Shown here in pieces: positions 17,742-40,671 of a stretch of DNA of 64,000 nt (its first letter is position 1; every line of letters starts with the position of its first letter). The stretch lies in the IMG/VR virus record IMGVR_UViG_3300020179_000005, positions 124,001-188,000 of that record; one strand, written 5' to 3'. Both the position numbers and the translations under genes were made by a program. The notes beneath the pieces are model-generated. The model saw only the letters and a program-made list of their open reading frames with translations. It was not told the DNA's origin and searched no databases.

Positions 17742-17799
17742 TTTATGGCTAGTATTTAGGTCTCTAATCTGAGATCGCTAGTCAAGAAAGGAAAACCCA

Positions 17800-19445: not shown

Positions 19446-19578
19446 ATGAATAAATAAAGACTGAGGGTGGTTCGGGAAATCCGGCCACCCTCTTTCTTTA
19501 TGGCTAGGAATTAGGTCTGTAGTTTTAGACCGTTAGCTTTTGTGTGTGTATGTGTCAATCAAGTACCAGGAGGTACTC

Positions 19579-19851
19579 ATGTCAATACACGAAATGAACG
19601 ACGACTTCCTCGACAGGATGTTTCTCTTGCAGGAACGCCTGGAAAAGGATGATCGTCAAGGAAACAAAATCCACAAGCGACGAGGTACACACTTCGTCAG
19701 GTACTGGTATTTCCCAAACGAGGACCTGTTCATCGTTGGGAAGTGTGAATCAATGGGCAAAGTGGTGAACACCTGGAGTAAGGAAACAACGTTTCTTCTT
19801 TCCAGCGAACCACCACGCAAAAGCAATAGCAAGCCGAAAGGCAAGCGATAA
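19579..19851 (+). CDS. Hypothetical protein
   Basis: AGGAGG RBS before ATG 19579. Confidence 0.65.
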   Translation: MSIHEMNDDFLDRMFLLQERLEKDDRQGNKIHKRRGTHFVRYWYFPNEDLFIVGKCESMGKVVNTWSKETTFLLSSEPPRKSNSKPKGKR

Positions 19852-19964
19852 CAACCAACACACACACACACACAAATGAAATAAGGGAGAGGGGCTTCGG
19901 CCCCTCTTTCTTTATGACTAGGAATATGGTTTCCTGGTCAAGGGTCCAAGGAGGGCCCAAAATA

Positions 19965-20858: not shown

Positions 20859-20973
20859 ATATTCTTTAGCCGATTGATATACAACTAGTAAATTTAACTA
20901 CATTATTAATCTTTTATTTTTATGACTAGTCATCCGACTTAGTCATCAAACCAAAAATGGGGAGGATAAACCC

Positions 20974-23016: not shown

Positions 23017-23132
23017 TAAATATTCTTTAGCCGACTGATATAAGACTAGTATATTTAACTACATTACTAGTCTTTTTTTTTATGACTAGGAATATGGTTT
23101 CCTAGTCAAGGGTCTTAGGAGGGCCCAAAACA

Positions 23133-23672
23133 ATGAAAGCAAACCGCTACTACATCGCTGGGACTGGCTCTCGTGAGCTGATTCTGGATGTTGACAAGCG
23201 TCGTGAGGTCCGTGATTATCTTGCGGACCTTCTGACAAAGGCAAAGGAAAAGCATGGTGACAAGTTGATTGTCATCAGCGGAATGGCAGAAGGCTTTGAT
23301 GAAGCACTTGCTCGTGCTGCAATCATGGCTGATGTGTCGTTTATCGCGGCAATTCCCAGCCCTGATTACATTGAGTACTACTGGGGTAAAACCAGTATGC
23401 TCAGGCGTAACAGAATGAGTGAAGCACAGGAAATCCTGTCAAAGGCACAAGAAATCGTTTACGTGTGCCCATCAAGCCCAAGCAAACGTGGCAATGGCGT
23501 TAAGTATCCGCAAAACGGTGGTGCAAACATCGACCGAAACGAGTGGATGGTCGACCATGCAAACATTGTCTGGGTGTACAATCCAACTACTCCAGGTACC
23601 GCTAGGTGCTATGCCTACCTCAAGAAGGTTGGCAAGCCCGCATTTATCATTGACACCACTAAAAAGCTTTAA
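23133..23672 (+). CDS. SLOG-superfamily (YspA/DUF1273-like) nucleotide-binding protein
   Basis: IAGTGSR, VISGMAEGFD, AAIP, RNEWMVD, GT..C motifs. Confidence 0.75.
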   Translation: MKANRYYIAGTGSRELILDVDKRREVRDYLADLLTKAKEKHGDKLIVISGMAEGFDEALARAAIMADVSFIAAIPSPDYIEYYWGKTSMLRRNRMSEAQEILSKAQEIVYVCPSSPSKRGNGVKYPQNGGANIDRNEWMVDHANIVWVYNPTTPGTARCYAYLKKVGKPAFIIDTTKKL

Positions 23673-23795
23673 CCAGCTAATTGGTTGGTAATAAGGGATC
23701 TATATATGGCTAGTAAATTTAACTATATTACTAGTCTTTTATTTTTTATGGTTAGCCATCCGGCTACCAAAATCAACAATGGGGAGGAAAAACCC

Positions 23796-24227
23796 ATGAG
23801 TAAGCGGTTTGATCAAGAAATACAGAAGGCAATACAGAAGGGTTACGTTGAAGGACTGACCATCAAGTGCGAGCGATGTGCTGGCACTGGATTGTGGCCA
23901 ACCATCGAAGATCCGGAAGGCTTGCACCACAAGTGCTTTCGGTGCGATGGAACTGGACAAGTTCAGATAATGAGCATCGCGCAAGTTGCACTCATCAGGA
24001 AACTGATGTATGTGGACCAAGTTATTGCCAGGGAGTCCGCTTTCGGAGGCACTACCGCGCAATGGTCACGTATCGAATACAAGATGGCTGGCCATTTGGC
24101 TGGCATGCCCTATCTGTCAATGGCAGAAGGCAGAAAAATCATTGGTGAACTGATGAACTCGAAGAAGACCAAGGAAAAAGAAAGCCTTGATCAATGCGAG
24201 ATCGACTTCGGTCACATCTACGAATAA
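23796..24227 (+). CDS. Protein with DnaJ-type zinc-finger repeats
   Basis: CERCAGTG and CFRCDGTG. Confidence 0.7.
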   Translation: MSKRFDQEIQKAIQKGYVEGLTIKCERCAGTGLWPTIEDPEGLHHKCFRCDGTGQVQIMSIAQVALIRKLMYVDQVIARESAFGGTTAQWSRIEYKMAGHLAGMPYLSMAEGRKIIGELMNSKKTKEKESLDQCEIDFGHIYE

Positions 24228-24372
24228 CAAGGCAAGCAAGAAAAGAAGAAGGGGTCCAAAAGGGCCCCTTTTTCTTTATGACTAGTACTTAGACTTCAAG
24301 TATCAGTCAGGGTTGAAGTGTCGTTTCCCAAATCAAAAATGACGCAATGTACATCCATACAAGGAGGATGAC

Positions 24373-24690
24373 ATGAACAAGCAAATCAAGTGCGGTGCCT
24401 GCGGGCATACGCACCCGACCGTGGCAGAGGTATTCAGCTGCCACAACACACTGGGGGTTTTCAAACTCCAGGAAGCGGATGAACTGGCGAAAGACATGCC
24501 AAAGCGCCAGTTCGTCAAGACTCCAAAGGCACAGGAGCCCAAGACCTACCAGGTCCATGTGTTCCCGACCAAGGAGGGCGCCGAGGCATTCATTGCCAAA
24601 ACGCCAAAGACCCGACTCGGAACGACGAAAGTCAAGTACGTGGACGGACAGCCCGAGAAGACCTATCAGGTCATCGAGAGCTTGAAGTAA
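24373..24690 (+). CDS. Hypothetical protein with N-terminal CxxCxxxH..C zinc site
   Basis: AAGGAGG RBS; KCGACGHTH…SC. Confidence 0.65.
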   Translation: MNKQIKCGACGHTHPTVAEVFSCHNTLGVFKLQEADELAKDMPKRQFVKTPKAQEPKTYQVHVFPTKEGAEAFIAKTPKTRLGTTKVKYVDGQPEKTYQVIESLK

Positions 24691-24838
24691 TAACCTAGCA
24701 GGGGAAAGAAGTCACCCCTGCAAACCAAGAGTCGGGTTCAGCCGACAGTAGAAGGGGCTTCGGCCCCTTTTACTTTATGACTAGTACTTAGGTCTCTATT
24801 CTGAGGCCGCTAGTAGCTCAAGAGAAAGGAAACTCATC

Positions 24839-27481
24839 ATGAGCGCAATCAACCAAGCGGTGAAGGGCGAAATCCCGATCATCGCATTCCTGTCAGGAAA
24901 GTGGCGAATCCTGACCAACAATCCCAGGGCACACGAAAAGTCTGCTCTGGAACTGTTCAGGGATACCAAAGAGCCAATCCAAGTCCAGACACGGACTCCA
25001 CAAGGTAGGACAATTTCCAACTACCTGATGGAAATCCACAATGGAACCTGGATCTACCCTGCGTTGAGCAAGTTGAACAAAAGAGGATTCACATTCCGAC
25101 TTGGTTCAATCTCAATCAGTGACCTAAAGCATGAAATCAAGTTGAAGAGGACCAATATCGACCTGTTGGTTGATGGATCCACTTTTGCTTGGGCAAATGC
25201 GACCTATGCATTCTTCCTTTACATCGATGGAATGGATCGTGAGATCTTCAGCCTCGAGGCAATGGACATGATTGCACTGGATGCAAAGAAGACACCAAAG
25301 CGACTGCAAGAAGTTGGTCGTTCATGCCAGATGTACAAGTCTGGTAAGTTCGACGAACTGAGCTGCTTGATGTTGGTGGACCCCAGCAATGAAATCCCAG
25401 AAGCTGAACATGATCACGGACCGGGTAACTGGCCTGCTGCTCGTGAAGAAGTCACCCTGGAGATGAGCCCTGATGGCAATAATTGCAATCCGTACGACGG
25501 ACCAATCATTGTCAGTCAGAGCTTCTTGCGGGAGATGTGCTACAAGATGGAAGAAGGTCATGAAAAGCGCCGTATGATTGCAATGATCATGGGCAACAAG
25601 ATTGACCGGTTCATCTTCCGACTGAGGACTCCGTACGGACTCGTAAAGGGTTTGGGTTTGTGCAGGCCTGACAGGGTGATGTCTCATGATGTCATCTTCC
25701 ACAGCAGTGCAATCAAGCCGGAGTTCCATTCGGATGGCAACAACTATCTGGCAACGGCGTTCATTCACGAGAACATCCACACGGCGATGTGGGACATGCA
25801 GAGCACGTTCCACAATCACGATTGGTTGTTCACCGAAGAGCGTTTCGTTCAGGACTCAGAGTCATTGGTGGATGACATCACCAAATCGTTCGCAGACAAC
25901 AAAGTGCCGGACTTCATCTTGCACCAAGTAAAGTTTGCTCATGACGAAGCTGGTGTGCACCACGAAGAACCTGTAGTGGCTGGTTGGAAGACCGCTGTTG
26001 TCAGGTGGCTTGAGGCAGGGAATGATCTGTCTGCTTCTGCTTGCTTTAACAGGCTGGCGATTGGTTCTGTAGAAATGCAGATGCAATCAGCACGAGACAA
26101 CAACCGTTGGTGGCTGCCAATGAGCAATGCATTCATGGCAACCGTCAACACCTATGCTGCCTTGGAGCACATGGCGATGATGGACCTTCCGGAAGAGAAG
26201 CGCAATTGTGTCTTCTATCTGGAGAATGTTGGTGTGGTAATTCCCACCGACAGGTTCGTTGATACCGCTGTGTTGCATGACACATGGGATCAAGACGGTG
26301 ATCAAGCCAAGTTCATCTGGATCAAAATCTGGTGCAGCCAGTATGGTCGAGAGAAACTGGAGAAGCTGTATTCGGACTCGGTACTGCCAGTCAACATGAT
26401 TGTGCCAGAGACACCGGAGGAAGCCATCGACGTCTGCGTAGTGATTCGTTCACCAAACGGACCAGGTGGGTACAGCATTGAGTGGTTTGATGCAGAGACC
26501 ATGCCATGGCACAGGCGTAATGACGAGCGGGTTCCGGTCATCGACTTGAACACTGCTCCATTCGGCATGTCGACTTTGCTGGAGACCTCTGAGCGAGGAG
26601 AGATTCCTCATTCAGTGGAGTACACCAGCAGGATGATCACACGAGACAACGTCAAACGGATGATCAGGGCACAGTTGGTAAATCCCAACGTAGGTACGTA
26701 TGCCAACTTGATCATGGCTTACTCTGCAATCATGGGAGTGAGCTATCCTGAGTGGCTGCCGGCAAACAGCAACGATGTGATCGACACCAATCAACAGGAG
26801 GCGGACATCGATTCCTTCCTCTACCTGAAGTTTGGAATGTTGCACATGCAAAAGTTGATCGTGAATGAAATCATTCGCGAACAGGTGCCTGTTGACAAGT
26901 TCGTGTTCAAGACACGTCTGTCGATTGGCATGGACGAAACAGATCAGGACATGCTTGAGGACATTCTGGTGGATGGCAAATTCACCCGTATGGACAATGT
27001 GAACAAGCACACCCTGGATCAAGTCAAGAAGATGATCGTTGAAGTTTCATTCGGTCGTCGTCTGGAATCTGAAACTCGTCAGTTGGTCATGGACAAATTG
27101 TCGATAGTCAAGCCGGAACACGTCGAATGGGCAAGTGGACTCTTCAAGGAGTTCGATGTGCGCCTCAAGCGTGCAGATGCAAAGTACCACTCCTCAGTGG
27201 CCAAGGCCGGTAAACTCGGGTTCAACAGCAAGTATCTCAAGATGTTTGCCGAAACCGAGCGCAGCAGGGAAATTGGCGATATTCAATCGGACCTGTACAA
27301 CAGGATCAATTCACACACAGCACCAGAAAAGTGGGCTGTACTGCTGTACCGGTACATCGTGGATCCGAGCCTGAACTCTGGCAAGTACGGTCTCAGTGAC
27401 CGGATCATCTTCCAGAATGGCCAGGAAGGACAACCCACGGTCATGGACCTGTTGATCCAAGGTTTGGCTGACCTCAAGTAA
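24839..27481 (+). CDS. Single-chain two-barrel RNA polymerase, YonO/cellular-RdRP-like (paralogue 1)
   Basis: Motifs YDGPIIVS, FRLRTPYGLVKG, WDQDGD (DxDGD), IRSPNG, NVGTYAN, DVID. Confidence 0.75.
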   Translation: MSAINQAVKGEIPIIAFLSGKWRILTNNPRAHEKSALELFRDTKEPIQVQTRTPQGRTISNYLMEIHNGTWIYPALSKLNKRGFTFRLGSISISDLKHEIKLKRTNIDLLVDGSTFAWANATYAFFLYIDGMDREIFSLEAMDMIALDAKKTPKRLQEVGRSCQMYKSGKFDELSCLMLVDPSNEIPEAEHDHGPGNWPAAREEVTLEMSPDGNNCNPYDGPIIVSQSFLREMCYKMEEGHEKRRMIAMIMGNKIDRFIFRLRTPYGLVKGLGLCRPDRVMSHDVIFHSSAIKPEFHSDGNNYLATAFIHENIHTAMWDMQSTFHNHDWLFTEERFVQDSESLVDDITKSFADNKVPDFILHQVKFAHDEAGVHHEEPVVAGWKTAVVRWLEAGNDLSASACFNRLAIGSVEMQMQSARDNNRWWLPMSNAFMATVNTYAALEHMAMMDLPEEKRNCVFYLENVGVVIPTDRFVDTAVLHDTWDQDGDQAKFIWIKIWCSQYGREKLEKLYSDSVLPVNMIVPETPEEAIDVCVVIRSPNGPGGYSIEWFDAETMPWHRRNDERVPVIDLNTAPFGMSTLLETSERGEIPHSVEYTSRMITRDNVKRMIRAQLVNPNVGTYANLIMAYSAIMGVSYPEWLPANSNDVIDTNQQEADIDSFLYLKFGMLHMQKLIVNEIIREQVPVDKFVFKTRLSIGMDETDQDMLEDILVDGKFTRMDNVNKHTLDQVKKMIVEVSFGRRLESETRQLVMDKLSIVKPEHVEWASGLFKEFDVRLKRADAKYHSSVAKAGKLGFNSKYLKMFAETERSREIGDIQSDLYNRINSHTAPEKWAVLLYRYIVDPSLNSGKYGLSDRIIFQNGQEGQPTVMDLLIQGLADLK

Positions 27482-27739
27482 TTAATCCTTTATTGATTGT
27501 GAATACCTATGGGTATTCTAAATAGGTCTCTCTGGCTGGCTAGGCTCTAGGTTGCTTGGCTGGCTTGGGTTGTTGCGTGTTGACTCTTCTTACGGGTCTA
27601 ACGCGCAAAATAGGGGTCTTTCCCCGTTTGGCGTTGCTGAACGGGTTTGACTCTGAAAATAGGGGCTCATTCCCGAGCCTCTTCAGGCGGTCACTGCCTG
27701 CGTAAGAAAGTGGCAAAGCGGTCAAGGAGCCGCAGCAAT

Positions 27740-28252
27740 ATGAAGCAGATACTGAAGGCGCTCTACGCCAACAATGATTGGCAGGAGCGAGTGAACACCG
27801 AGACGGGCAAGCGATTCTGGCAGGTGCTAGTTGGGCCTGTTGGCTTTGATGCCGTTTCGGCGGAAGACCGTCAGGTCAACGCGTACAACTGGGCAATCAA
27901 CGAAGATGACCAGTTGACCGTGGAAGTGGACGGTGCCAAGCACTCAGTGAACCTGAAGTCCTATGTGGACGAAGTGGTTCGCAGTGCGACTGGTGGAATC
28001 AACCCGAAGGGTGTGTTGCGCGTCTTGTGCGACGACATCGTGCTGGGGAAGGCCACCGAGTTGACCTACAAGGATGGCAGCGTCCACCCGCAAATCACGG
28101 TGTACCCCGTGAACTTCGTGGTTGAGACCTACCAGCGGAGCAGGCCAGCAGCGGTGAAGATGGACAACGCAGCGTTCGCAGCGCTGAAGAGTCGGATGTC
28201 GCAGCCGACGCGGCCAGTGGTGGTCGCTGAGAGCAGTGACGCACCGTTCTGA
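27740..28252 (+). CDS. Hypothetical protein, possibly SSB-like (acidic C-terminal SSDAPF)
   Basis: AAGGAG RBS; beta-rich body; GC-rich codons; followed by a GC hairpin. Confidence 0.55.
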   Translation: MKQILKALYANNDWQERVNTETGKRFWQVLVGPVGFDAVSAEDRQVNAYNWAINEDDQLTVEVDGAKHSVNLKSYVDEVVRSATGGINPKGVLRVLCDDIVLGKATELTYKDGSVHPQITVYPVNFVVETYQRSRPAAVKMDNAAFAALKSRMSQPTRPVVVAESSDAPF

Positions 28253-28468
28253 CCGAACGGCGGAATGTGTTGGTGGGGGGGCTTCGGCCCCCCTGCCAAT
28301 AAAAAATTGGTCTAGGTATATAGGTTCTTGCTATCCCTCCTTGGGGACACCCAGTCCGGCGGTGCTATGCACTTCTCACCGTCGGGCTGGGTCGTCTTTT
28401 CGTGTGGGTGCTTGAATGGTAATACAAAAAAAATAGGGGTAACATCCAAGTCAACAGTGGAGGGCATC

Positions 28469-28675
28469 ATGCCTAAGCAATCAGTGAATCCAGTAATTCC
28501 GTTTGAAGTAATGATTCCCAAGCGGGGAGATAGGTCTCAGGTGTTGGCGGAAATCGTCAGCATCGTCGAGAACGCACCTTCTTCCAAGTGGGACAAGTAC
28601 CAAAGTGCAGAACAAGAGTTCCATCTCTTCAATGTGATGGCAGCTTCCTCAATCCCGGAGGACAATAACGTATAA
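28469..28675 (+). CDS. Hypothetical protein
   Basis: GGAGG RBS before ATG 28469. Confidence 0.55.
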   Translation: MPKQSVNPVIPFEVMIPKRGDRSQVLAEIVSIVENAPSSKWDKYQSAEQEFHLFNVMAASSIPEDNNV

Positions 28676-28679
28676 GATG

Positions 28680-29150
28680 TTTCCCTGTACAACCGTAATC
28701 ACATGCAGGGTTATGCCATCGGGCGAAGAACCGATGTTAGCGGAGAATGGTTGGATTGTCCGGGTTTATTCTGTGTCGGCCCTTAAGTGGAAGTACGTAC
28801 AGGATAGACGAAACTTATTGTGAACTGGGCTGGCCCGTCCCAAAGGATGTCGGAGTCTGTTGATATCTTCGGAGCAACAGACAGGGCGCTATTAATGGGA
28901 GATTGATGTCCCGTGGATACATCAATGGTGTAATTGCAGCATCAGACAGCTCTTGCTGACATACCAAGTAGACAAAGTGCAGTAGTATGTCACAGAATTA
29001 AAAGTGGGGAAGGCGTTCGCAACTCCCCATGGTTATGGGACTGGCTTAAATGCCGGGCCATTGACGGGTTTCGGTTCAACCGAGTAATGTCCCATCTGGC
29101 TGACCCACCTACGGCGAACCTAGTGGGTGGGGCGCAAGCCCTGCCCACTC
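28680..29150 (+). ncRNA. Candidate large structured non-coding RNA
   Basis: No convincing ORF; dense hairpins (CATCGG/CCGATG, TCTGTTG/CAACAGA, ATTGATGT/ACATCAAT, TGACATAC/GTATGTCA, TGGGGA/TCCCCA, GTGGGTGGGGC-GCAA-GCCCTGCCCAC). Confidence 0.6.
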
Positions 29151-29226
29151 GATAATAATATATAAAAAAATTTTTTATTAGCTTATAATTCTAAAAATTT
29201 ACACTAGAAAAATAGGGGGGTGTTTC

Positions 29227-30286
29227 ATGACGCAAGAATGGACAGATTTGGTGCCCAAGTGCACCATACACAATGTTCCGATGAGAGTAAAACAACTGAC
29301 ACTCACTGAAGAACGCGAAGTTCGTGATTGTGACCTGATCATTGACGACACGCGCAAACACTGGGTTTGTGATTCGTGCCGCATTGTTTGGGTTTCCATC
29401 ATTGAGAACAACGAGATGAATGTACTTGGTATTCCAAGGTCGCACTAAAAATAGGGGTAATTATGAAATATGTGTTATTGCCAGTAATGTGGAAAATAAA
29501 GAATGCTTGTTGGCGCATAGCCGTCAAATTGAGCAAACTTGAATACACGATACTTGATCGTATCGATGCAATTGATCCCCACTATGCCGATAGGCAGTGG
29601 GCTAAGAAAATATTCAACAAAAACAAAGGGGTAAAGTAATGTCATCATGGAAGTTAACCAAAGCAGTAATGCGTGCTCAACTAATCTGGATGGTCATCGC
29701 ATTTTCGGTAATGTTCATCGTCGGTTTGTTTGTGACCAAGGACAAGGTTCCAAGCAAAAGGACCAAGGATGGTTTCAAGACCGAAGAGATGCAGTCCGTC
29801 TACGATCACTATCTGAATAAGGAGATGAAGTATGGCAAGTCCTGAAAACACCAAATGGTGGAAGGAATCCGAACGCTTGAAGGAAAAAAACAAGCGTCGT
29901 TCTGCCCGCCGCAAAGCAAATCCCGGTTTCCATAATCCCAGAGCCAAAAAGAAAGAGAGTGAATAATGTACATATTCCACGAAAACCAATACGACACCGA
30001 TAGCAGCAGTATCTACGGGTTCTTTGTCTACCGCAAAGACGGAAAGTCCATGCCCAAGGGTATGATCACTTCGTTCAATGCGATGTGGTACAAAGCCTTG
30101 GATAGGTTCCCTTCTTTCAGCCAGATCGAGTTCGCCGTTCAATCACCAACTGGTGACTCGTCAGACCACTTCGACTACACGATGCCCTGTGCGAATTTCG
30201 AACAGGCAAAAGCCATTGTGGACAACTATCGTGCAGGCTTGTACGAAATGCTGGGTGAAATTCGTAAAGAGGAGTTGTACTCATGA
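29227..30286 (+). CDS. Run of small hypothetical genes (29227..29448, 29639..29845, 29966..30286 and short ORFs between)
   Basis: Overlapping start/stop codons with RBSs. Confidence 0.55.
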
Positions 30287-30631
30287 AACCGATCACTAAA
30301 ATTGGTTTGATCGTCACCACGATTGCATTCCTAATTTCTGGTGCAGCATACAAGTTCCGGCGAAAGCCGGGCTTGTAATGCTGTTACCGGGAATATTCAC
30401 GGCAATCATTCTAAATCTTATTGTCATAGTCTTGGTCGGATTGGCCAAGGTTAATGACGATAGAAAAAAATAACACTAGCCTTCCTGTTTTAAAAATTCC
30501 TAGGAAAATAGGGGTCATATTGAAGGGAGGTGATGCGTGTTTGATTGGTTGTTCGATCTAATCACTGAACTAATAGATGCAATATTCGGAACATATGAAG
30601 AATTCTAACAACAAAAGAAAGAGGTAATGTC

Positions 30632-30832
30632 ATGCGTAAGTTAGGTAAACTGTTGGGCAAGACAACCGCCCAAACAAAGAACCTCGCCAAGTCCACCAAG
30701 AGTGGTGGTAAGGCTGCGATCAGCAAGACAAAGTCAACATTGGTAACGGCCAAAGACGACTTCGTTGCTGGTTACAAGGAACAGGCTGGTGGAGAAAGTT
30801 CCTCACCAATCGTTCCTGAATCAGGCGATTGA
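30632..30832 (+). CDS. Small Lys-rich hypothetical protein
   Basis: GAGGT RBS. Confidence 0.55.
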   Translation: MRKLGKLLGKTTAQTKNLAKSTKSGGKAAISKTKSTLVTAKDDFVAGYKEQAGGESSSPIVPESGD

Positions 30833-30925
30833 AATACAAAATAGGGGATCGTTCAGCAGTGAACTTTCCTTCAGCAATACATCATATCATATCAAACAAT
30901 AAAACACAAAGGAAAAAAACATATT

Positions 30926-31963
30926 ATGTCCACACTAAGCAACAAGTTCGGTATCAAGAGCGACACATTCGCTGTTGTCACCGAGAACCCCGATGCGCTC
31001 AAGTCCCAGAGTTCAACCGTCAAGTTGATCAAGGACAAGCGCGTCAAGATCAAGGGTTCCATCAACGGCAATGCCATTGACACCTATGCGACTCTGGAGT
31101 CCGCATTCTGGACTCGTCTGACGGTTCGTGACCACGAAGTCCGCCGCCAGAACGCAGAGCCCCGTATCAGCCAAGTCTTTGGTGGCGTGTTCAAGCCAGT
31201 CAAGTTGAAGGTTGAAGTCGAACTCGGCGGTCAGGTAATGACGCTGAGTGAGTTGATCGAGACCCTCATTCTTGAGAGCGCCAAGGGCAAGAGCCTTGAT
31301 GACGTGCGTAAGATCCTCAACGACACCAACCTGATCAAGGGCCTCAGCGACGGTATGCCACTGATGTTCCAACAGATGGGTGCCAGCCAGAACGGTTTCG
31401 CCCACGCGGTGGAAATCTTCAAGGCGGCAGGTGGTATTGACGATCTGGCAACGCTGCACAAGAATCCGCGTTTCCACACCTGCTATGACATGAAAGCCAA
31501 TCAGGGTCTGGAAGTGGTTGCCTTCGAGTTGGGTTCAGCCGACCGCAAGCAATCCACCACTGGTCAGGGTTTCATTGACATCGTTGACGCGGTGTTCAGC
31601 AACCTCGTGCGTGTCATTGAACACAAGACCGCAGCGAGCATCCTGTCCAAGCAGATTCAGGAGAAGGCAGCCGAGATGTCCCAAGGGGATGTCAAACTGC
31701 ACGAAGCCAAGATCAAGAACGAACTTGACATGAGCCGTCAGTACCCAGTGATCTGGTCTGGTGCTTCTCGTCAGGTTGATGTGCAAGCCAATGGTGAGAA
31801 AGTTACCAGAGACAAGTACAACGCAACCAACGCACCGTGTGGTCGTTGGACGGTTGTGACTGCCAATGGTAACGTGGATCTGGATGTCTGGTCTAACTCG
31901 ACCAACAAGCCAGCCAACGCACCTGTCGCAGTACAGGTTGACACCACAGTTGCACCGTTCTAA
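30926..31963 (+). CDS. Hypothetical protein, probably highly expressed, C-terminal VAPF
   Basis: 345 aa, strong C/G third-position bias, AAAGGA RBS. Confidence 0.75.
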   Translation: MSTLSNKFGIKSDTFAVVTENPDALKSQSSTVKLIKDKRVKIKGSINGNAIDTYATLESAFWTRLTVRDHEVRRQNAEPRISQVFGGVFKPVKLKVEVELGGQVMTLSELIETLILESAKGKSLDDVRKILNDTNLIKGLSDGMPLMFQQMGASQNGFAHAVEIFKAAGGIDDLATLHKNPRFHTCYDMKANQGLEVVAFELGSADRKQSTTGQGFIDIVDAVFSNLVRVIEHKTAASILSKQIQEKAAEMSQGDVKLHEAKIKNELDMSRQYPVIWSGASRQVDVQANGEKVTRDKYNATNAPCGRWTVVTANGNVDLDVWSNSTNKPANAPVAVQVDTTVAPF

Positions 31964-32066
31964 GTAGAAGGTGTTGTTCCCGCCAGTTAGTTGCCATCAG
32001 AGCAAAAAGCCCATCTGGCGGGGACACCACCAATACTTATAATAATAAAAAATAATACTAGCCCTA

Positions 32067-32366
32067 ATGAAAGGTAGGCTATTTATGTACCCGATTGCCT
32101 TGGCGGTGTTCTTGGGTTTTGCTGTGGCGTTTGCCACGGATGCAATTCTCAATTATCTTCCGTTCCTGCAGAAGGTTCCATACCTAGGAAAGCCTGAAGT
32201 TCTGTTTCCAGTGTTGACCGTCTTGACGGTCTGGGCAGCAGATGTCAGCATTCTGGGAGCCTATGGATTTGGTGGAGATCAATGGTTGAATGTCGTTGGT
32301 TCGGCATTTGCCATCGTGGTCGCTACTAAAACCGTAGATGAAATCACTGACGCTTTGACGCGTTAG
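32067..32366 (+). CDS. Small 3-TM membrane protein (holin-like architecture)
   Basis: Three hydrophobic segments; function not established. Confidence 0.55.
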   Translation: MKGRLFMYPIALAVFLGFAVAFATDAILNYLPFLQKVPYLGKPEVLFPVLTVLTVWAADVSILGAYGFGGDQWLNVVGSAFAIVVATKTVDEITDALTR

Positions 32367-32451
32367 AGGTAGTAGTGGGTGGTAGTGTCCTTGCACTATC
32401 ACCCACAAACCCCTATAAAAAAAATTTTACTAATTCAAAAAGGAGCAAACA

Positions 32452-32682
32452 ATGACAAAACGCCCACCACTAACACCATGTATCATTTGTGAAAAAGCAG
32501 TAATGCACCTATGGGAAAACAACGCCACCAACCTCAATGGTGGTTGTGACATCAGGATCAGTGCTCATTATGGTAGTGAGTTTGATACCTCTAAATTTGC
32601 CGGCATTGTGTGTGACGAATGTGTAGACAACTTGGTTCAATCCAAACGACTCAGGTTTATCGGTTACAATCACGATCTATAG
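32452..32682 (+). CDS. Small zinc-binding protein
   Basis: CIIC and CDEC; AAGGAG RBS. Confidence 0.65.
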   Translation: MTKRPPLTPCIICEKAVMHLWENNATNLNGGCDIRISAHYGSEFDTSKFAGIVCDECVDNLVQSKRLRFIGYNHDL

Positions 32683-32945
32683 AACGAATGTGTACTGTCT
32701 ACTCTATAGTCTATATAAGGCTATAGGGTAGCAGTAACAAAAAATATTTCTAGTCTTCTGGGTACCGAAAAAATTCGGTCCTTTACGGTAATAAATATTT
32801 TTATTTTTATTAGTCCTCTGGTCACCGAATTTTTCGGGGGGCCCCAGAAAAAAGTTCTTTTAGGTGTTGCATCTAAAAAAGAATATATGCTATAGTATAT
32901 TCAGCAAGCAATACCAAAATTATTCAAACTTACAAGGAGCAATGT

Positions 32946-33176
32946 ATGCCAAAGCAACATCAATCCAAAGCCATCAAAGAAGTCTTTCGGGAGCTGAGAA
33001 GACTTGGCTTTGTAGTAGAACAGAAGAAATCAGGCGCATACCGGATTGTCCCCCCTTCAACAATTCCGGGCCCGATATATACAACTCACGGCACAGAATC
33101 AGCGTTACACCCAATACGCCGTGACTTTAAAAAATATTATAACATAACTCTTCAATCTACTCTTAAAGTCAAATAA
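32946..33176 (+). CDS. HicA-like small protein
   Basis: Size and pattern ELRRLGFVVEQKKSGAYRI resemble the HicA dsRBD fold; the canonical GSH His is absent. Confidence 0.45.
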   Translation: MPKQHQSKAIKEVFRELRRLGFVVEQKKSGAYRIVPPSTIPGPIYTTHGTESALHPIRRDFKKYYNITLQSTLKVK

Positions 33177-33670
33177 CAAGGAAAAGTTTGTTAGAGCTAC
33201 GAGGTTAAATATGCCCCTATATTGTGACCTCGTAGCTCGATTTAATTAAAAGGACTTTTTATTATTAAACTTAAATAAATATCAGTATTAGAATAAAATG
33301 TTATCAAAAGTAAAATTAAAGGCTCTCTCGGGCCTGAACCCATTATACTTTTATTATATTTTGTATTATCAACATACTATATCAATATCAAAGGCGGTAG
33401 TGTCATGGCTAAATTGCCCAACAAATGGAATGATCAGGATCGCAAAGACTTCAAAAATGGAGTACGCCTACGTGCTGTTACCATACAGGATAAAAAAAAG
33501 ACGTGGAACAAAAAGGCTTGTAGAATAAAAATACCCTTGGATCACAACTTCGACTAACTTCCAGTGGGTTGCAGTGGTGAACAGTGGGGATATCTTTATA
33601 TTCCTACAAGCATATACTCTATCCCTATTAGCATATACGTAAAAATTATAAAAATTTTTGCGGGCGGCCT

Positions 33671-33743
33671 GCCCTGGTAGCTCAGTGGATAGAGCAACGG
33701 ACTTCTAATCCGCAGGTCGTAGGTTCGACTCCTACTCAGGGCG
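33671..33743 (+). tRNA. tRNA-Arg(TCT)
   Basis: GCCCTGG acceptor, anticodon loop CTTCTAA, GGTTCGACTCC. Confidence 0.95.
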
Positions 33744-33932
33744 CAAAATGGAAACTAAAAGGATTGGCTGTTGCGTCAGCCAATTCGGTATAGTTTCTGG
33801 GCACATAACAAAAATGTGTGGATGAAGACCAACCTTGTAGGATTCCCTCCATTTATCCTAACATGTTCCCGATTCCTACTCCCCCTGTGAATCGCCAGAA
33901 CTATATCCAACTTAAGAAAGGTTCATTGCCAT

Positions 33933-34391
33933 ATGTCAACGCAGCTCATGGATTCTAAACGCTTACCAATGACAGATGACCCTAAGATAGTTTCTATTCT
34001 TAGAGTTCATCATGCATTATGGAATAGGGAATCTTTTATTGAGCGGGGCGGCCAGAAGTACACGCCTTTTGTACCAGCTCATGATGGTTACATATCCGTC
34101 GTACTGCCAAACGAACAGGGTTATAACTTATTATGGATTACTCAGAATCTGAATAAATCCACTTCAGGATCTTTAGAGATTAAAAAAGCCCGTTCGTTGG
34201 GTAACGACAAAAGAATTACATGGATCGTAGACAATTCAAACTCTAAGTTTTTGTACCTTGGTTCGGTCCATACTTGCAATTATTTTGACGGCCAAGAAGA
34301 TATAATCATTGAGCGTTATTACCAAGATGAACCCACTCAAGTCCTATGGACTAACATGCCTTTTTACTTGCCTGTCAAGTCTAAATATTAG
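33933..34391 (+). CDS. Hypothetical protein
   Basis: 152-aa ORF. Confidence 0.65.
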   Translation: MSTQLMDSKRLPMTDDPKIVSILRVHHALWNRESFIERGGQKYTPFVPAHDGYISVVLPNEQGYNLLWITQNLNKSTSGSLEIKKARSLGNDKRITWIVDNSNSKFLYLGSVHTCNYFDGQEDIIIERYYQDEPTQVLWTNMPFYLPVKSKY

Positions 34392-34557
34392 AAATTGTTA
34401 ATGGGTCAAATTTATATAGGTTTGTTCTCAACCATACTATATATATATTAATATGTTGTAATTCAAATAAAATAAATTTCAACAAAACTTGCATATTTTA
34501 CCCTTCTACACTATAATATTTATACACCTTTATACACCTTAAACGGAGAGTACCATA

Positions 34558-34764
34558 ATGGCTAAGCCATCAAAAACACCACAAATTGAACAATTCATCA
34601 ACACACACGTCAACAATACTTTTTCAACAAAAGAGATGTGCGAACAAATCGGAGTGAGCCTTCCAACTTTGTTGAATTATATTAGAGCCAATCAAAACAG
34701 ATTTCAGCTTGTATCCTACGGTACTTACACCATAGTTCAAGCTTCAACATCTGCTAATTCTTAA
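34558..34764 (+). CDS. Small helix-turn-helix protein
   Basis: FSTKEMCEQIGVSLPTLLNYIR. Confidence 0.7.
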   Translation: MAKPSKTPQIEQFINTHVNNTFSTKEMCEQIGVSLPTLLNYIRANQNRFQLVSYGTYTIVQASTSANS

Positions 34765-34955
34765 CTTTATTATTAGATAAGGTTACTATACAAGGATATA
34801 ATGCCCGTTCCCAGCGGGCAGGGAAAAGATCCCTAACATAACAGAGCAATACTGTGAAGTCGGAGATAGGCAACCTGCCATCTGTGACGGGCATTTCGTT
34901 TTTGTCCGCACATCTTCGGGTTCGCAACCTGCGTTATACTAATGACAATTGTTAA

Positions 34956-35639
34956 TTGATTGTCAGACTAGACGATAAGGAGCGAAAACGCATGCTAGTA
35001 CAAAACGCGATAAAATATTTTGTAGTAACCTTACTTACCTTTGTTAACTTTACTGGACTGTTTGTAGTCAATCAGTTACATGAAGAAACAAAGCAAGTTA
35101 AGGAGCCCCCTAGTACCCTTGTGGTACAAACACATCACACCGTACAACAACATAACAATCTTTATTCATTAAATGAAACTAAAGATATTGGTTCTAATAT
35201 AAATAGCGTTCAGCATTACGGACTAACATTTAAACATGGTGATATTTCTTGGTTACCATACCTTGCTGCTCAAGCAGGTTGGCCAGAACACACATGGAAT
35301 AAGTTAGGCCAGATAATCTTACGCGAGTCAGGCGGTTGTCCCAACCGTCGTGGCGGTGATGTCGTAAATTCTAATTGTGTCATAACCAGAGTTTCTGAAT
35401 GGAACCACCGTTCAGACACAGGCTTGTTACAGATCAACGGAGTCAATTACAACACTAAGCGCAACAAGTGGGCAGCAGTATGCAATAGAATGTCTGTCTG
35501 CACACAAGAGCCTTTGTTGGATCCATTGACCAATCTTAAAGCCGGTAAACTTCTTTATGATATAGCAGGATGGTCACCATGGAATCCCTGCACATGGGAT
35601 ATTTCCAAGTGTCCAAAAAAGGTATCGACATCTGACTAA
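34956..35639 (+). CDS. Membrane-anchored lytic transglycosylase (SLT/lysozyme-like); start probably ATG 34992
   Basis: RESGG catalytic Glu, DTGLLQIN, NLKAGKLLY..GWSPW; N-terminal TM segment. Confidence 0.8.
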   Translation: MIVRLDDKERKRMLVQNAIKYFVVTLLTFVNFTGLFVVNQLHEETKQVKEPPSTLVVQTHHTVQQHNNLYSLNETKDIGSNINSVQHYGLTFKHGDISWLPYLAAQAGWPEHTWNKLGQIILRESGGCPNRRGGDVVNSNCVITRVSEWNHRSDTGLLQINGVNYNTKRNKWAAVCNRMSVCTQEPLLDPLTNLKAGKLLYDIAGWSPWNPCTWDISKCPKKVSTSD

Positions 35640-35712
35640 AATAGGGGATCTTATTCCCTTTATTTTAATTCAAAATATGGCATAAACATCTAACTAAAGA
35701 AAGGCTAGTTGT

Positions 35713-36126
35713 ATGTTCCTTACTATGATGATCGTTCTTGGTTTATCATCATTTATCGTAGAAATGATGCTCGCAGTGAATATTCCGTGGTGGAGACAAA
35801 ATGCTCATCGGTTGAAATGGTTTAACATGATCATTTCAATCACTTTGTCATCAGTACTTGGCTTTCTATTTGGAGCCGCAGGTCTTGTCGTTATGGGCGC
35901 TGCTTTGTTTGGTACTGTTTTATCTATTCCGGGTTATGCATTCTTGCACTGGAATTATGATTCAGAGCAAGCAGCCCGCTATGGTGGCAACATGCTTTCC
36001 CATATTCGCGGAAAATGGGTTCAAGCATTCAAAGATCTTGCTAAAGTAATTTATACAGTAATAAAAGTAATTACATTTCCCGTCTGGGGATTGAGATGGG
36101 TAGCAAACAAAATAAACAATAGATAG
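35713..36126 (+). CDS. Membrane protein
   Basis: Multiple hydrophobic segments. Confidence 0.65.
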   Translation: MFLTMMIVLGLSSFIVEMMLAVNIPWWRQNAHRLKWFNMIISITLSSVLGFLFGAAGLVVMGAALFGTVLSIPGYAFLHWNYDSEQAARYGGNMLSHIRGKWVQAFKDLAKVIYTVIKVITFPVWGLRWVANKINNR

Positions 36127-36173
36127 TATATTTATAGCCATATCAACGCAACTATGGAGAAAATGGAGATTAT

Positions 36174-38759
36174 ATGACATTGTCCTATCGACCAAGAGTT
36201 CGGCTCAACGCAGAAATATACGGTCCTTTGCGTAGCATGAACGATTACCAGTTCGGCTTCTATGACACAGGCTTTCTGCGTCAAGCCGTACAGGCACTTT
36301 CTGAGCAGCATTCTACGGAAAAACCTGTGTCGTTTAGAATGGCCACTCTACCAATACCTCAGACACCATCCGAATTACGGATAGCAGAAGCCATCGTTCG
36401 CCATCCACAGATTTCTTATGCAATCGTGGACAAGGACAAAATGGCCTTCGTTATCATCGAGGGGTGTCCAGGTTGGCTAGAGGCATTCAAGCGTCTTGGT
36501 TACGAAGTTTACGCCGGAGACAAGACTGCGAAACGACTCAAGACTTTTCACCGTCCTGCACTGTTGAACGCAACGTTTGCCAAGGACGAGTTGAACGTAA
36601 TGATCGTAGATCCCACTCAATATTCAGAATACAATTTCAATGATCCCGAAATGTTAGCTTCTTTGTCACAAGACTATCCCGGTGTAGATTTCAAGGACCC
36701 AAAAGTTCTTGCTCGCTTGTTGGACGGTGGTTTTGTCGTATCTTCAAAGTTGATACAGCGTGCTGTAGCCAACTTGCCGGTATACGAACCCTCAAAGACC
36801 ACCGACACCAAAGAGTATTATTACGATTGGCGGATTCGCAAGAAGCTGGTACGCAATCTCTTGAAGCAGAAAGTATACAATGCCCGCATCGTTTTCGATA
36901 AGGGTTTCCTCAAGGGTAATTGCATAGTTTCTGACAACCTACCTGAGGGAGTTGATATCATCACTTCCCAGGATAACATCAAGTCAGAAATCAAGTATGA
37001 AAACGGATTCAAATTCATTGCAGAGCCGCAAGGTTCCCACGAACGAGTAATCACCGACGACCAAACGCTCATCAACCTTCCAAATCTGTTTCGCCAGTCA
37101 GACATGGAGTTCTGGCTAGACGAAGAGTACAAGAAAATGTTTGATGATGCGGTCAACTGTCGTCTGCTTACGAACTGGCGTGAAATCTACAAACGACAGT
37201 TCCGTAACCTCGCAGACGCAGAAGACGAAGAGGCCAACTCTAGAATGTCGTACGTTGGTTACCGATGGGTATCCTCTGGAATGAAGATAACCGATTCACC
37301 TTGGCTCTTTGAAACATTGGCAACCAGCCACGCAAAACCATACCAGTCTCGGGTTCCCATTCCTTGTTCTGTCTACGAACAGGTGATACCAGAGTCGTTG
37401 GCACATATGGCTGGCTATGAGCTGAGCGTACAGGTGGAACAGGGTCAAATCATTCGTATCAACGAGATAGGCGTTCACGTCGTCAACGACGCTGATTGGC
37501 TCGAGATGTACGAGTCGCACGGCGGCCACGACGAGGACGATTATTTCAAGCTGTTCTACCGCACCATGGAAGGCGGGAAATTTGACGGACAAAAAGTCGT
37601 CATCGTATGCCGTTCACCAAACGGTATCGGTGAGTACTCGATCTTTCGGTATGTAGAGGGCCAATGGTCACCCACTTGGCACAAAGCAGATGGCACTCCG
37701 ATCAAGTTCCCCACCGTTTCCGGGCGCGGATGGCCAAAACGACTCAGTGAATGTATTCGTGATAAAGAAGTACGTTATACTGGATTTCCATCCGAACACG
37801 TTAAGAAGTCCAAGAAAACCGGCTTGTATACACAAGACGACGTCATTTCAGATATCAAAGTCGCCATGACCGGCGGCAATGTCGGAGGTTACGTCAATGC
37901 CGCAATGGTTCATTCTTTGATCATTCACAAACATCGTCCAGTCCAACTTTGTTCTATGGAAAAGGCAATTGACAAGTGCATCAACCCCGACTTTGCAGAG
38001 GATGTACTTGCGATTGACGAAGAAGCCAAGAAGATCGTCAGAGAGATCATCGATTCCGCACAACCAATAGACACGAATGTTTGGCTGAAACGAGGTTTCA
38101 AACGTTATCTGAAGGACGGAGAAGAGATCGTACTGCACGACGGTAAGATAACACAAATGAATCTACTTTGTTCACAAAAGTATTCGGAGTATTGCCAGAA
38201 AGTACGCAATTGGGCGCAGCTAAACGCTAAGCCACCGCAGATCGTACATGATCTCGCCCAACGCCTCTACTTTCAGGCACTTTCCACGGTAAAGGACTTT
38301 CGTAGCAAGATCTATCAGGTCAATATTTCTGAAACCACGCAATCAACTGGCAACATAGTCAGAGGATCATGGGAGTCAATGTACACTGAGATTGTTAATA
38401 TCATTAATTCTTTCCAGCGTATAGAAGACAAGCATGATTTTGTGTTGTCCATGTATTCGGTTTCTTTGAACGTTCCCACATCTGCAGGTAAGGTTACGGA
38501 TCAGATCGTAATGAATCGATTCGTTTATCCTTATTTGGAGTCTGCATTACAGTTTTACGGTATTGCAAGCACCGTCTTTTTCACCCCGAAAGCGGACGGC
38601 GATGTGGACGTAAACACGTTCAAGAGCGACAAATGGCAGTACGACAAGCACATCTATCACGACCCGATGTCTTTCCAAGAAGCACATCGTCAGGACACGG
38701 AAGTTGTGTTCACACCCACGATCAAGTTCACCAGAACTTCCAGCGTATCAAGATATTAA
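36174..38759 (+). CDS. Single-chain two-barrel RNA polymerase-like protein (paralogue 2), variant catalytic loop GGHDEDD
   Basis: LLDGGFVVS, NARIVFDKGFLKG, HGGHDEDDY, VCRSPNG, NVGGYVN, KAID, collinear with 24839..27481. Confidence 0.7.
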   Translation: MTLSYRPRVRLNAEIYGPLRSMNDYQFGFYDTGFLRQAVQALSEQHSTEKPVSFRMATLPIPQTPSELRIAEAIVRHPQISYAIVDKDKMAFVIIEGCPGWLEAFKRLGYEVYAGDKTAKRLKTFHRPALLNATFAKDELNVMIVDPTQYSEYNFNDPEMLASLSQDYPGVDFKDPKVLARLLDGGFVVSSKLIQRAVANLPVYEPSKTTDTKEYYYDWRIRKKLVRNLLKQKVYNARIVFDKGFLKGNCIVSDNLPEGVDIITSQDNIKSEIKYENGFKFIAEPQGSHERVITDDQTLINLPNLFRQSDMEFWLDEEYKKMFDDAVNCRLLTNWREIYKRQFRNLADAEDEEANSRMSYVGYRWVSSGMKITDSPWLFETLATSHAKPYQSRVPIPCSVYEQVIPESLAHMAGYELSVQVEQGQIIRINEIGVHVVNDADWLEMYESHGGHDEDDYFKLFYRTMEGGKFDGQKVVIVCRSPNGIGEYSIFRYVEGQWSPTWHKADGTPIKFPTVSGRGWPKRLSECIRDKEVRYTGFPSEHVKKSKKTGLYTQDDVISDIKVAMTGGNVGGYVNAAMVHSLIIHKHRPVQLCSMEKAIDKCINPDFAEDVLAIDEEAKKIVREIIDSAQPIDTNVWLKRGFKRYLKDGEEIVLHDGKITQMNLLCSQKYSEYCQKVRNWAQLNAKPPQIVHDLAQRLYFQALSTVKDFRSKIYQVNISETTQSTGNIVRGSWESMYTEIVNIINSFQRIEDKHDFVLSMYSVSLNVPTSAGKVTDQIVMNRFVYPYLESALQFYGIASTVFFTPKADGDVDVNTFKSDKWQYDKHIYHDPMSFQEAHRQDTEVVFTPTIKFTRTSSVSRY

Positions 38760-40329: not shown

Positions 40330-40671
40330 GAGTGAATCATTGATTTCAATTTGTAACAAGATCTATGAATGAATCATCATTTGGGATTAGTATCATGTCT
40401 GAGGAATGAATCACAAACATTTAATGGTAACATGTAAAGCGAATGAATCATTTTCGCCGATTTGTAACAAACGCAGTAAATGAATCACTAACAACGATTT
40501 TGAACATGATGCACGAATGAATTATAGTCATTGATTTGTAACAATTACTGGGAATGAATCATCAGGATGAATTCGTAGCAAACCACCTGAATGAATCACA
40601 CATCGAAACATGTATCATTAGGTAGAAATGAATCAACACCTTTGATTGTAACACGTACGAAAAATGAACCA
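40330..40671 (+). ncRNA. TIGR-like dual-repeat guide array: 9 units of 37 nt (last 36) plus a terminal edge repeat
   Basis: Edge RAATGAATCA at 40330, 40367, 40404, 40441, 40478, 40515, 40552, 40589, 40626, 40662, alternating with loop ATTTGTAACA-like repeats; unique 8-9 nt spacers between them. Confidence 0.9.

Follow-up and report, generated by a model that had tools for sequence, protein, structure and literature searches.

An uncultured phage with a genome of 209.7 kb (IMG/VR record IMGVR_UViG_3300020179_000005) encodes two distantly related proteins, each predicted to be a single-chain two-barrel RNA polymerase. We analyzed a 64,000-nucleotide stretch of this genome (positions 124,001 to 188,000 of the record), hereafter the window, to which all coordinates refer. 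Gene A occupies positions 24839-27481 on the + strand and encodes 880 aa, while gene B occupies positions 36174-38759 on the + strand and encodes 861 aa. A region of repeated cassettes (class 1, 12895-24814, +) precedes gene A, and a second repeated motif (class 2, 27607-35647, +) fills the region between A and B. The small ORF137 (35713-36126, +) lies upstream of B.

A and B are paralogs with shared catalytic-type residues

To test whether A and B are homologous, we first compared the two proteins by BLASTP, which gave one significant local alignment (A532-719 to B475-663, 27% identity, E 6e-11). Profile-profile comparison of the two families with hhalign (33 sequences for A and 52 for B) gave a probability of 100% and an E of 4.7e-57 over 712 columns. 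The similarity therefore spans nearly the whole length and is far beyond chance. An initial annotation, made from the sequence alone, had listed six collinear blocks shared by the two proteins, and all six are present, collinear and located on invariant or nearly invariant family columns. These are DG..VS (A D220/G221; B D184/G185), R....G..KG (A R261, G267, K270, G271; B R238, G244, K247, G248), the acidic loop (A D484-Q-D486-G-D488; B D453-E-D455-D456), RSPNG.G.YSI (A 537-547; B 480-490), NVG.Y.N (A 615-623; B 568-575) and ID (A 648-649; B 599-600). One further shared block had been missed, K(K)T.KRL (A K151/K154/R155; B K117/K120/R121).

The acidic loop, the putative Mg-binding triad in A, is encoded at 26288-26302 (+) in A and is invariant in 33 family members. 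The corresponding loop of B, encoded at 37530-37541 (+), is invariant in 52 family members but is DxDD, one residue shorter than the DxDGD named in the initial annotation. Three carboxylates are kept, although with a spacing that departs from the DxDxD of every characterized two-barrel RNA polymerase, so that the metal site of B is unproven. In the wider family, DxDD or DxDDD was found by regular expression in 80 of 125 long hits, and only the core of the A clade has DxDGD. DxDD is the ancestral state on a tree built from a fast alignment with FastTree only, in which the deep branches are unsure. The KG of the beta-like barrel is encoded at 25646-25651 (+) in A and at 36912-36917 (+) in B. K270 and G271 of A are invariant and R261, upstream of them, is nearly invariant; in B, K247 is invariant, whereas G248 and R238 are nearly so. 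These Lys and Arg residues lie inside predicted beta-strands, K270 and G271 of A in strand 267-276 of the model.

We next asked whether A or B could be assigned to a known family. Searches of Pfam, PHROGs and NCBIfam, sequence and profile searches of the PDB, and megablast and tblastn searches against GenBank phages (50,697 phage records for tblastn) gave nothing usable for either protein; no Pfam family was matched at E<=1 apart from a chance DUF2292 hit. Comparison by hhalign with YonO of Bacillus prophage SPbeta, as a single sequence and as an 18-sequence profile, gave probabilities of 0.2-0.3%, and comparison with gp64 of Thermus phage P23-45 gave 2.0% for the B family and 0.2% for the A family. 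Membership of the YonO and gp64 families is therefore rejected. Some YonO homologs carry the RdRP model PF05183, which neither A nor B matches. Nevertheless, the YonO alignment shows the same collinear series (DG, R..P..KG, DNDGD, N.G...N, ID). A has 61 metagenomic homologs and B has 268 representative clusters with E<=1e-3 (clustered at 50% identity), nearly all metagenomic and unnamed; the two proteins belong to a large unannotated metagenomic family. The published survey filter [RK]xP...DxDxD would have missed its DxDD loop.

Predicted models match two-barrel RNA polymerases

AlphaFold produced high-confidence models of A (pLDDT 86.7, pTM 0.85) and B (pLDDT 90.4, pTM 0.89). In the model of A, the beta-like barrel spans about residues 220-310 and the beta-prime-like barrel about residues 425-550. 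Foldseek matched A to plant RDR2 (7w82, E 6e-8) and QDE-1 (7y7r, E 2e-6), and B to RDR2 (7rqs, E 1e-6), P74-26 gp62 (8f5m, E 7e-6) and P23-45 gp64 (8f72, E 3e-5), all with a probability of 1.0; no other hit reached a probability of 0.99. The next hits were single double-psi beta-barrel (DPBB) proteins, namely expansins, formylmethanofuran dehydrogenase subunit D, aspartate decarboxylase and the p97 N domain. In BFVD, the top hits of A were two uncharacterized uncultured-phage proteins (TM 0.72 and 0.62), followed by a phage 'RdRP' and the predicted model of P23-45 gp64 (A7XX94, E 2e-3). No right-hand polymerase appeared among the listed hits, and no T7-like family was matched in Pfam, PHROGs or NCBIfam. 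These data, which rest on predicted structures, support the inference of the initial annotation that A and B are two-barrel polymerases, although by sequence they are not members of the YonO or QDE-1 families.

Since the best structural matches are eukaryotic RNA-dependent polymerases (about 10% identity, TM-scores of only 0.3-0.4) and B lacks the canonical DxDxD spacing, we considered that one or both proteins could be RNA-dependent polymerases or catalytically dead structural relatives. This is very unlikely. The three acidic residues and the Lys/Arg pair are conserved across 33 and 52 diverged sequences, which argues for retained catalysis, QDE-1 itself also copies DNA (PMC9508822), and a dsDNA phage has no evident use for an RNA-copying enzyme.

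Two classes of repeated motifs flank the polymerase genes

To characterize the repeats preceding each gene, we searched the window for TTTATGRCTAG with up to 1 mismatch and obtained 21 matches, against 2.5 +/- 1.4 expected, of which 18 lie on the + strand between 12936 and 24784. In total, the class-1 region contains 19 cassettes, most of which consist of a GC hairpin plus T-run followed by TTTATG(A/G)CTAG, whose TGRCTAG forms the 5' arm of a downstream hairpin. Their TATG elements start at 12938, 13500, 14664, 16700, 16822, 17138, 17263, 17744, 18081, 18740, 19499, 19913, 20921, 23081, 23705, 23726, 23747, 24277 and 24776. Terminator-like sites number 39 against 16.3 +/- 4 expected. RNAalifold predicted no common structure for 23 class-1 sites, because the stems are in different registers, but a per-site test against shuffled downstream sequence showed hairpin involvement at 41 of 46 sites, against 46% in the shuffled controls. 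The last cassette (24753-24814, +), the putative promoter of A, ends 25 nt upstream of the ATG of gene A, with its motif 54 nt before A.

The class-2 motif, AAAATAGGGG, occurs in 8 exact copies, all on the + strand, at 27607, 27656, 28430, 29209, 29448, 30505, 30838 and 35638, and nowhere else in the window. The first copy lies 126 nt after the stop codon of A. The last (35638-35647, +) lies 65 nt upstream of ORF137 and 0.5 kb upstream of B, and is the putative promoter of an ORF137-B operon. ORF137 encodes a small hydrophobic, membrane-type protein that is probably co-transcribed with B; it is conserved upstream of B at 40 or more places in the related loci, including copies of the same phages, at 39-62% identity. 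We considered it as a specificity factor, but rejected this since it is of membrane type and has no family or PDB match.

In order to determine whether this layout is conserved, we examined related loci (designated by L numbers) from five other phage lineages. A class-1-type motif ends just before gene A in four of them (L005, L006, L007 and L013), and a class-2-type motif runs from just after A to just before B in four of them. Class 1 is TTTATGACTAG in the window and L005, and TTTATGGGTAG in L006, L007 and L013, and the 3' arms of the hairpins change to match. Class 2 is AAAATAGGGG in four lineages (the window, L006, L007 and L013), TAAAAGGGGG in L005 and TAGGAATAAGTCGG in L014. Copies equivalent to the last class-2 site lie at L021 9463, L022 9414 and L023 9478, with B starting at 10001 in each locus. 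B is found downstream of A in all 8 contigs (6 lineages) that extend far enough.

These motifs might instead be RNA-level or regulatory elements, such as 5' or 3' stability hairpins, processing sites, or operator or antitermination sites, with the targets of the two polymerases lying elsewhere. Indeed, class-1 sites overlap hairpins on both sides, a palindromic ACTAGT-containing element precedes several of them, and in two class-2 copies the G run lies 5-8 nt before a start codon and could act as a ribosome-binding site. However, the motifs lie on one strand, almost always in intergenic DNA 30-95 nt upstream of start codons (usually 32-94 nt for class 1), and each is confined to one contiguous gene block. 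In addition, a Shine-Dalgarno-like GGAGG or AAGGA follows separately in most class-1 leaders, and the layout matches transcription start sites mapped by experiment in P23-45 (PMC10770324). We thus regard a non-promoter role as improbable.

The gene B module

Searches for a third paralog with HMMs of both families and a DxDxD scan found none within the window, which is only 64 kb of the 209.7-kb genome, so that a third polymerase elsewhere cannot be excluded. Likewise, no third motif class was found in the window downstream of B or on the left arm; the only candidates, such as AGATTACAA (5 copies) and ATAGAAAAA, were weak, lay inside coding sequence and were not accepted. At least ten contigs of 170-270 kb carry B but gave no A-family match, and in the related loci examined (L025, L027, L042, L053 and L062) there is no strong repeated motif within 10 kb of B. 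B can therefore work without A, and its own promoter class was not found.

In every lineage, B sits in a module with an SF2 helicase and an iteron-like array rather than among structural genes, which fits a virion role no better than another role. The array, of about 37-nt periodicity with a AATGAATCA core, was detected by k-mer positions only (window 40331-40663; L034, L036, L039) and was not reported by Tandem Repeats Finder. This linkage, and the lack of a recognized primase in the window, raise the possibility that B is a replication enzyme, either a primase or an origin-activating RNA polymerase acting at the array. This seems very unlikely, since the helicase is of the SF2 ResIII/SNF2 type, not a replicative DnaB- or primase-linked helicase, and all characterized phage two-barrel single-chain enzymes are transcriptases, although only 64 kb of the genome was examined for a primase.

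Discussion

The initial annotation proposed a phage transcription system with two dedicated polymerases acting in a temporal cascade. Fold, motif order and the conserved layout support this reading, with the qualification that the motif in front of each gene marks the promoter class that expresses it, not the class it reads. The phage is known only from metagenomes, without enzymatic or expression data, and we consider it somewhat more likely than not that A and B are functional, DNA-dependent, single-chain two-barrel RNA polymerases that arose by an old duplication within one phage-specific family and drive successive stages of transcription. In this model, class-1 cassettes (a terminator hairpin, a T-rich element ending in TTTA, then a transcript that starts near TGRCTAG and folds into a 5' hairpin) express about 15 small early genes and, from the last cassette, A. 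A would then recognize AAAATAGGGG, probably starting in the G run, and transcribe the next block of genes and, from the last copy, the ORF137-B operon. B would serve the remaining stage, and we favor the version in which B is also packaged, injected and fires class-1 promoters at the next infection, closing a loop that does not depend on the host polymerase, as in P23-45 and phiKZ. The pairing of enzyme and motif rests on gene position and on analogy with P23-45, as the distribution of motif variants over lineages does not tell A from B.

A less likely alternative is a linear cascade in which the host RNA polymerase, perhaps with an injected or early phage factor, reads class 1, A reads class 2, and B is a late-gene polymerase that is never packaged. 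YonO is such a non-virion polymerase for late genes (PMC5467207), B lies in a non-structural module conserved in phages lacking A, and class-1 cassettes include canonical hairpin-plus-T-run terminators of the kind bacterial polymerases obey. Sigma-70-like hexamers also occur at the divergent junction at 8.7-9.0 kb, so the host polymerase is probably used somewhere. On the other hand, class-1 sites have no -35/-10-like hexamers, and none of the 19 sites was picked by a sigma-70 consensus scan. The part after TTTA differs between close lineages (ACTAG against GGTAG), which is not expected of a host sigma site, the most similar known architecture is read by a virion enzyme, and no late motif for B was found in the window.

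That architecture is the pre-early cassettes of P23-45 (PMC10770324), in which a virion polymerase reads TTATTCYTTTA placed straight after terminator hairpins and expresses the gp64 gene; gp64 then reads promoters with a CTAGGGGC core. Both motifs resemble classes 1 and 2. As inferred here, P23-45 has two single-chain two-barrel polymerases that are each other's closest relatives, two distinct promoter motifs, the second with a TAGGGG core, terminator hairpin plus T-rich promoter cassettes between small early genes, and the gene of one polymerase under the promoter class of the other. In contrast, A and B are free-standing, about 870 aa long and alignable end to end, whereas the virion enzyme gp96 is fused to the tape measure protein, and P23-45 is an 84-kb thermophilic siphovirus rather than a phage of about 210 kb from environmental metagenomes. 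YonO is similar in size (about 840-880 aa, single chain), but occurs as a single enzyme in a temperate phage and transcribes one late operon. QDE-1 and RDR2 share the barrel order, beta-like first and beta-prime-like second, but are cellular enzymes making double-stranded RNA. The virion RNA polymerase gp66 of crAss-like phage phi14:2 is a single-chain two-barrel enzyme of the QDE-1-like branch that reads its own short promoter motif (bioRxiv 10.1101/2020.03.07.982082); it is a domain of a virion protein, has the motif DFDID and did not appear among the Foldseek hits for either model.

Two-barrel polymerases are the catalytic core of all cellular transcription, and their minimal single-chain relatives (YonO, crAss gp66, P23-45 gp64 and gp96) are the main window on how little is needed for promoter-specific RNA synthesis. 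To these our analysis adds a large sequence family that profile methods do not link to any of those enzymes, and a natural pair of full-length, alignable paralogs in one genome, each with a clear candidate promoter of 10-17 nt. If active and specific, the two enzymes would be candidates for orthogonal expression tools. More speculatively, and doubtfully on present evidence, the family defined by B could be a so far unrecognized branch of two-barrel RNA polymerases whose active site uses a DxDD loop, and the subclade that also carries A could be the first jumbo-phage lineage to run a closed circuit, independent of the host polymerase, with single-chain enzymes, supplying two compact, mutually orthogonal polymerase-promoter pairs.

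Our data also provide evidence that phages of jumbo size, about 200 kb, can use single-chain rather than multisubunit phage polymerases, which a 2026 review of jumbo phages does not mention. Jumbo phages with multisubunit enzymes use two phage polymerases in sequence, as inferred here for A and B, and in those phages the genes of the virion enzyme are expressed by the non-virion enzyme (PMC7598289, PMC13282480). Those enzymes, however, are made of four to five polypeptides related to bacterial beta and beta-prime, whereas here each predicted enzyme is a single chain from the RdRP/YonO-like branch.

Two homologous ORFs with a predicted two-barrel polymerase fold

The window lies within a 209,701-bp IMG/VR contig (UViG 3300020179_000005, about positions 124001-188000), and the same phage occurs on 23 contigs from several samples. 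It carries six tRNA genes, a UvsX/RecA-like gene, an SF2 helicase, a subtilase, and AAA and Lon-like ATPases. Three adjacent genes at 55317-59835, encoding a prokaryotic JAB domain (55317-57089), a ThiF/E1-like domain (57093-57860) and an AAA ATPase (58237-59835), look like a ubiquitin-like conjugation and deconjugation module. No nucleotide or protein match to either ORF of interest, ORF A (24839-27481, + strand, 880 aa) or ORF B (36174-38759, + strand, 861 aa), was found among 50,697 GenBank phage records.

To determine whether the two ORFs are homologous, we first compared them by BLASTP, which aligned only the centre of the proteins (A532-719 to B475-663, 27% identity, E 6e-11). We then collected relatives of each, obtaining 61 clusters for A, at 98-25% identity, and 268 representative clusters at E<=1e-3 for B. 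The two family profiles aligned over 712 columns with a probability of 100% and an E value of 4.7e-57. All six blocks listed in the initial annotation are present and collinear, and they fall on invariant or nearly invariant columns: DG (A 220-221, B 184-185), R....G..KG (A 261-271, B 238-248), the acidic loop (A D484/D486/D488, B D453/D455/D456), RSPNG.G.YSI (A 537-547, B 480-490), NVG.Y.N (A 615-623, B 568-575) and ID (A 648-649, B 599-600). A seventh shared block, K(K)T.KRL near the N-terminus, is also invariant. The one correction to be made is that the acidic loop of B is DxDD, one residue shorter than the DxDGD of A. In B, the order is R393-x-P395, then the acidic loop, then RSPNG. Some A-type polymerases at 65-67% identity (P0003 and P0004, homologues of A of 1062 and 1041 aa) carry an extra NADAR domain (PF08719), and one source names such a protein 'ribA/ribD-fused uncharacterized protein'.

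Searches of Pfam, PHROGs and NCBIfam, and of the PDB with single sequences and with profiles, gave no identification for either protein. AlphaFold models built on the family alignments were confident, with pLDDT 86.7 and pTM 0.85 for A, and pLDDT 90.4 and pTM 0.89 for B. When compared with the PDB using Foldseek, model A returned only maize and Arabidopsis RDR2 and Neurospora QDE-1 at E<=1e-3 (best 6e-8, probability 1.0), whereas model B returned RDR2 (1e-6), P74-26 gp62 (7e-6) and P23-45 gp64 (3e-5). In both lists the next hits were single double-psi beta-barrel proteins. Among predicted viral structures, the best matches to model A were two uncharacterised proteins of uncultured Caudovirales (TM 0.72 and 0.62), followed by a phage protein annotated as RdRP and by P23-45 gp64. 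That the proteins are RNA-dependent or inactive appears very unlikely to us.

The initial annotation had likened the blocks to those of QDE-1-type enzymes and of YonO. An alignment of YonO that we built indeed shows the same order of invariant blocks (TDG, R.P..KG, DNDGD, N.G...N, ID). However, profile-profile comparison with YonO (single sequence and an 18-sequence profile) and with gp64 gave probabilities of only 0.2-2%. A and B are therefore like YonO, QDE-1 and gp64 at the level of predicted fold and motif order, but they are not members of those sequence families.

We built a FastTree phylogeny of 59 members of the family. All A-type sequences were placed in one clade on a long stem, whose basal members still carry DxDD and of which only the core has DxDGD. 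The rest of the family, including B, is DxDD, which therefore looks like the ancestral state of this family. The published survey of viruses with two or more such polymerases filtered on [RK]xP...DxDxD, a filter that would miss this family. Phage single-chain two-barrel polymerases have been characterised previously, and pairs of phage polymerases used in sequence are known from P23-45 (single-chain) and from phiKZ and AR9 (multisubunit). What is new here is the family, which has no profile link to any described one, its DxDD loop, the presence of two free-standing, fully alignable paralogues, and the setting in uncultured phages of about 200 kb. Full-text searches found no description of it, and a 2026 review of jumbo phages discusses only multisubunit phage polymerases.

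Two repeated motif classes precede the polymerase genes

We next examined the repeated motifs associated with each gene. The class 1 motif, TTTATGRCTAG with up to one mismatch, occurs 21 times against 2.5 expected, and 18 copies lie on the + strand between 12936 and 24784; a slightly looser pattern gives 19 sites. Most are preceded by a GC-rich hairpin and a T-run, and terminator-like sites number 39 against 16.3 +/- 4 expected. The TGRCTAG part is the 5' arm of a downstream hairpin at 41 of 46 sites pooled over five phages, against 46% in shuffled controls. The motif usually lies 32-94 nt before the next start codon, and the last copy is 54 nt before the ATG of A. It remains possible, although we consider it unlikely, that the motifs are RNA-level or regulatory elements and not promoters.

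In several class 1 cassettes (16788-16810, 17103-17125, 17228-17250, 20875-20905, 23036-23066 and 23700-23735), a conserved element containing the palindrome ACTAGT (GAGTACATTACTAGTAAAT or ACTAGTAAATTTAACTACATTA) takes the place of the upstream terminator hairpin and may be a binding site for a regulator. At 13448-14720, two neighbouring early genes (13551-14609 and 14715-15464) share a 108-nt upstream region at 92% identity that includes the class 1 cassette; the first of these genes has a matrixin-like zinc-peptidase motif (Pfam PF00413, E 2e-5). Just left of the first class 1 site lie two pairs of near-identical intergenic repeats, one of 67 nt at 97% identity (11704-11770 and 12302-12368) and one of 50 nt at 92% (11804-11853 and 12991-13040), which contain hairpins and could be small RNAs or terminators.

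The class 2 motif, AAAATAGGGG, occurs eight times, all exact, all on the + strand, and only between 27607 and 35647. The first copy is 126 nt after the stop codon of A, and the last is 65 nt before ORF137 (35713-36126), the small gene directly upstream of B. ORF137 encodes a 137-aa hydrophobic, membrane-type protein with no family or PDB match, which is conserved upstream of B, directly or within a few kb, at 40 or more places in the related loci (39-62% identity).

The layout is conserved while the motif sequences drift

To investigate whether this arrangement is conserved, we carried out pattern scans of IMG/VR, which found 17 loci with A-type genes and 48 with B-type genes (loci are designated L followed by a number). 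In every contig that extends far enough downstream of A (8 contigs, 6 lineages), B follows on the same strand, 7-12 kb away. In four other lineages a class 1-type motif ends directly before A; it is TTTATGACTAG in L005 and TTTATGGGTAG in L006, L007 and L013, and the 3' arms of the hairpins change to match. A class 2-type motif runs from just after A to just before B, and is AAAATAGGGG in L006, L007 and L013, TAAAAGGGGG in L005, and TAGGAATAAGTCGG in L014. Position is conserved while the sequence drifts between close relatives, which is what is expected of promoters read by phage-encoded enzymes. It is not expected of host sigma-70 sites, which class 1 does not resemble. Sigma-70-like hexamers (TTGACA, 17 nt, TAGACT on the minus strand) were seen at 8735-8990, the divergent junction between the minus-strand left arm and the plus-strand genes, together with a palindrome GTATACTTG...CAAGTATAC around a TTGACA on the plus strand. 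This junction could be a host-type promoter and operator region.

A proposed polymerase cascade

The closest worked example is that of P23-45 (PMC10770324), in which a virion polymerase reads TTATTCYTTTA, placed right after terminator hairpins, and transcribes small pre-early genes and the gp64 gene; gp64 then reads promoters with a CTAGGGGC core. Here, class 1 (hairpin, T-run, TTTTTCTTTA, then the transcribed hairpin) and class 2 (AAAATAGGGG) resemble those two motifs, and gene A occupies the position of gp64. This resemblance is a lead and not a test; the motifs are short and class 1 is of low complexity. We propose that A is made from the last class 1 promoter, reads class 2, and so switches on the ORF137-B operon. 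We regard the core of this scheme, that both enzymes are active DNA-dependent polymerases, that the two motif classes are promoters, and that A reads class 2 and thereby expresses B, as somewhat more likely than not. Class 1 needs an enzyme that is present at the start of infection, for which the economical candidate is B carried in the virion, a role that we consider about as likely as not within this scheme; the host polymerase or an unseen third enzyme are the alternatives. B may also, or instead, transcribe later genes. A cascade started by the host, with B acting as a late, non-virion enzyme, is a possible but less favoured reading.

B in phages with no detected A

At least ten contigs of 170-270 kb carry B but gave no A-family match. 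In the loci examined, B sits in the same module, which comprises a homologue of the 308-aa ORF, an iteron-like array, B, an SF2 helicase and a subtilase. In five of those loci (L025, L027, L042, L053 and L062) there is no strong repeated motif within 10 kb. The block at 12.9-30.9 kb of the window, which holds the class 1 genes, A and the first class 2 sites, is richer in G+C (0.45-0.50 against 0.38-0.39 on either side), whereas genes from 30926 onward (ORF345, ORF137 and B) are shared with phages lacking A. The richer block therefore looks like a module specific to the subclade that carries both polymerases.

The iteron-like array (40331-40663; also L034 13785-14118, L036 9184-9371 and L039 9375-9857) consists of about ten units spaced roughly 37 nt apart, with the core AATGAATCA and often ATTTGTAACAA. 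It lies between the B operon and the helicase module and is conserved next to B in phages that lack A. The array looks like iterons or an origin. Tandem Repeats Finder at default settings did not report it. That B is a primase or an origin-activating polymerase next to this array seems very unlikely to us. The helicase conserved downstream of B (41915-43603) is of the SF2 ResIII/DEAD/SNF2 type, not a replicative helicase, and might be a transcription-associated ATPase working with B.
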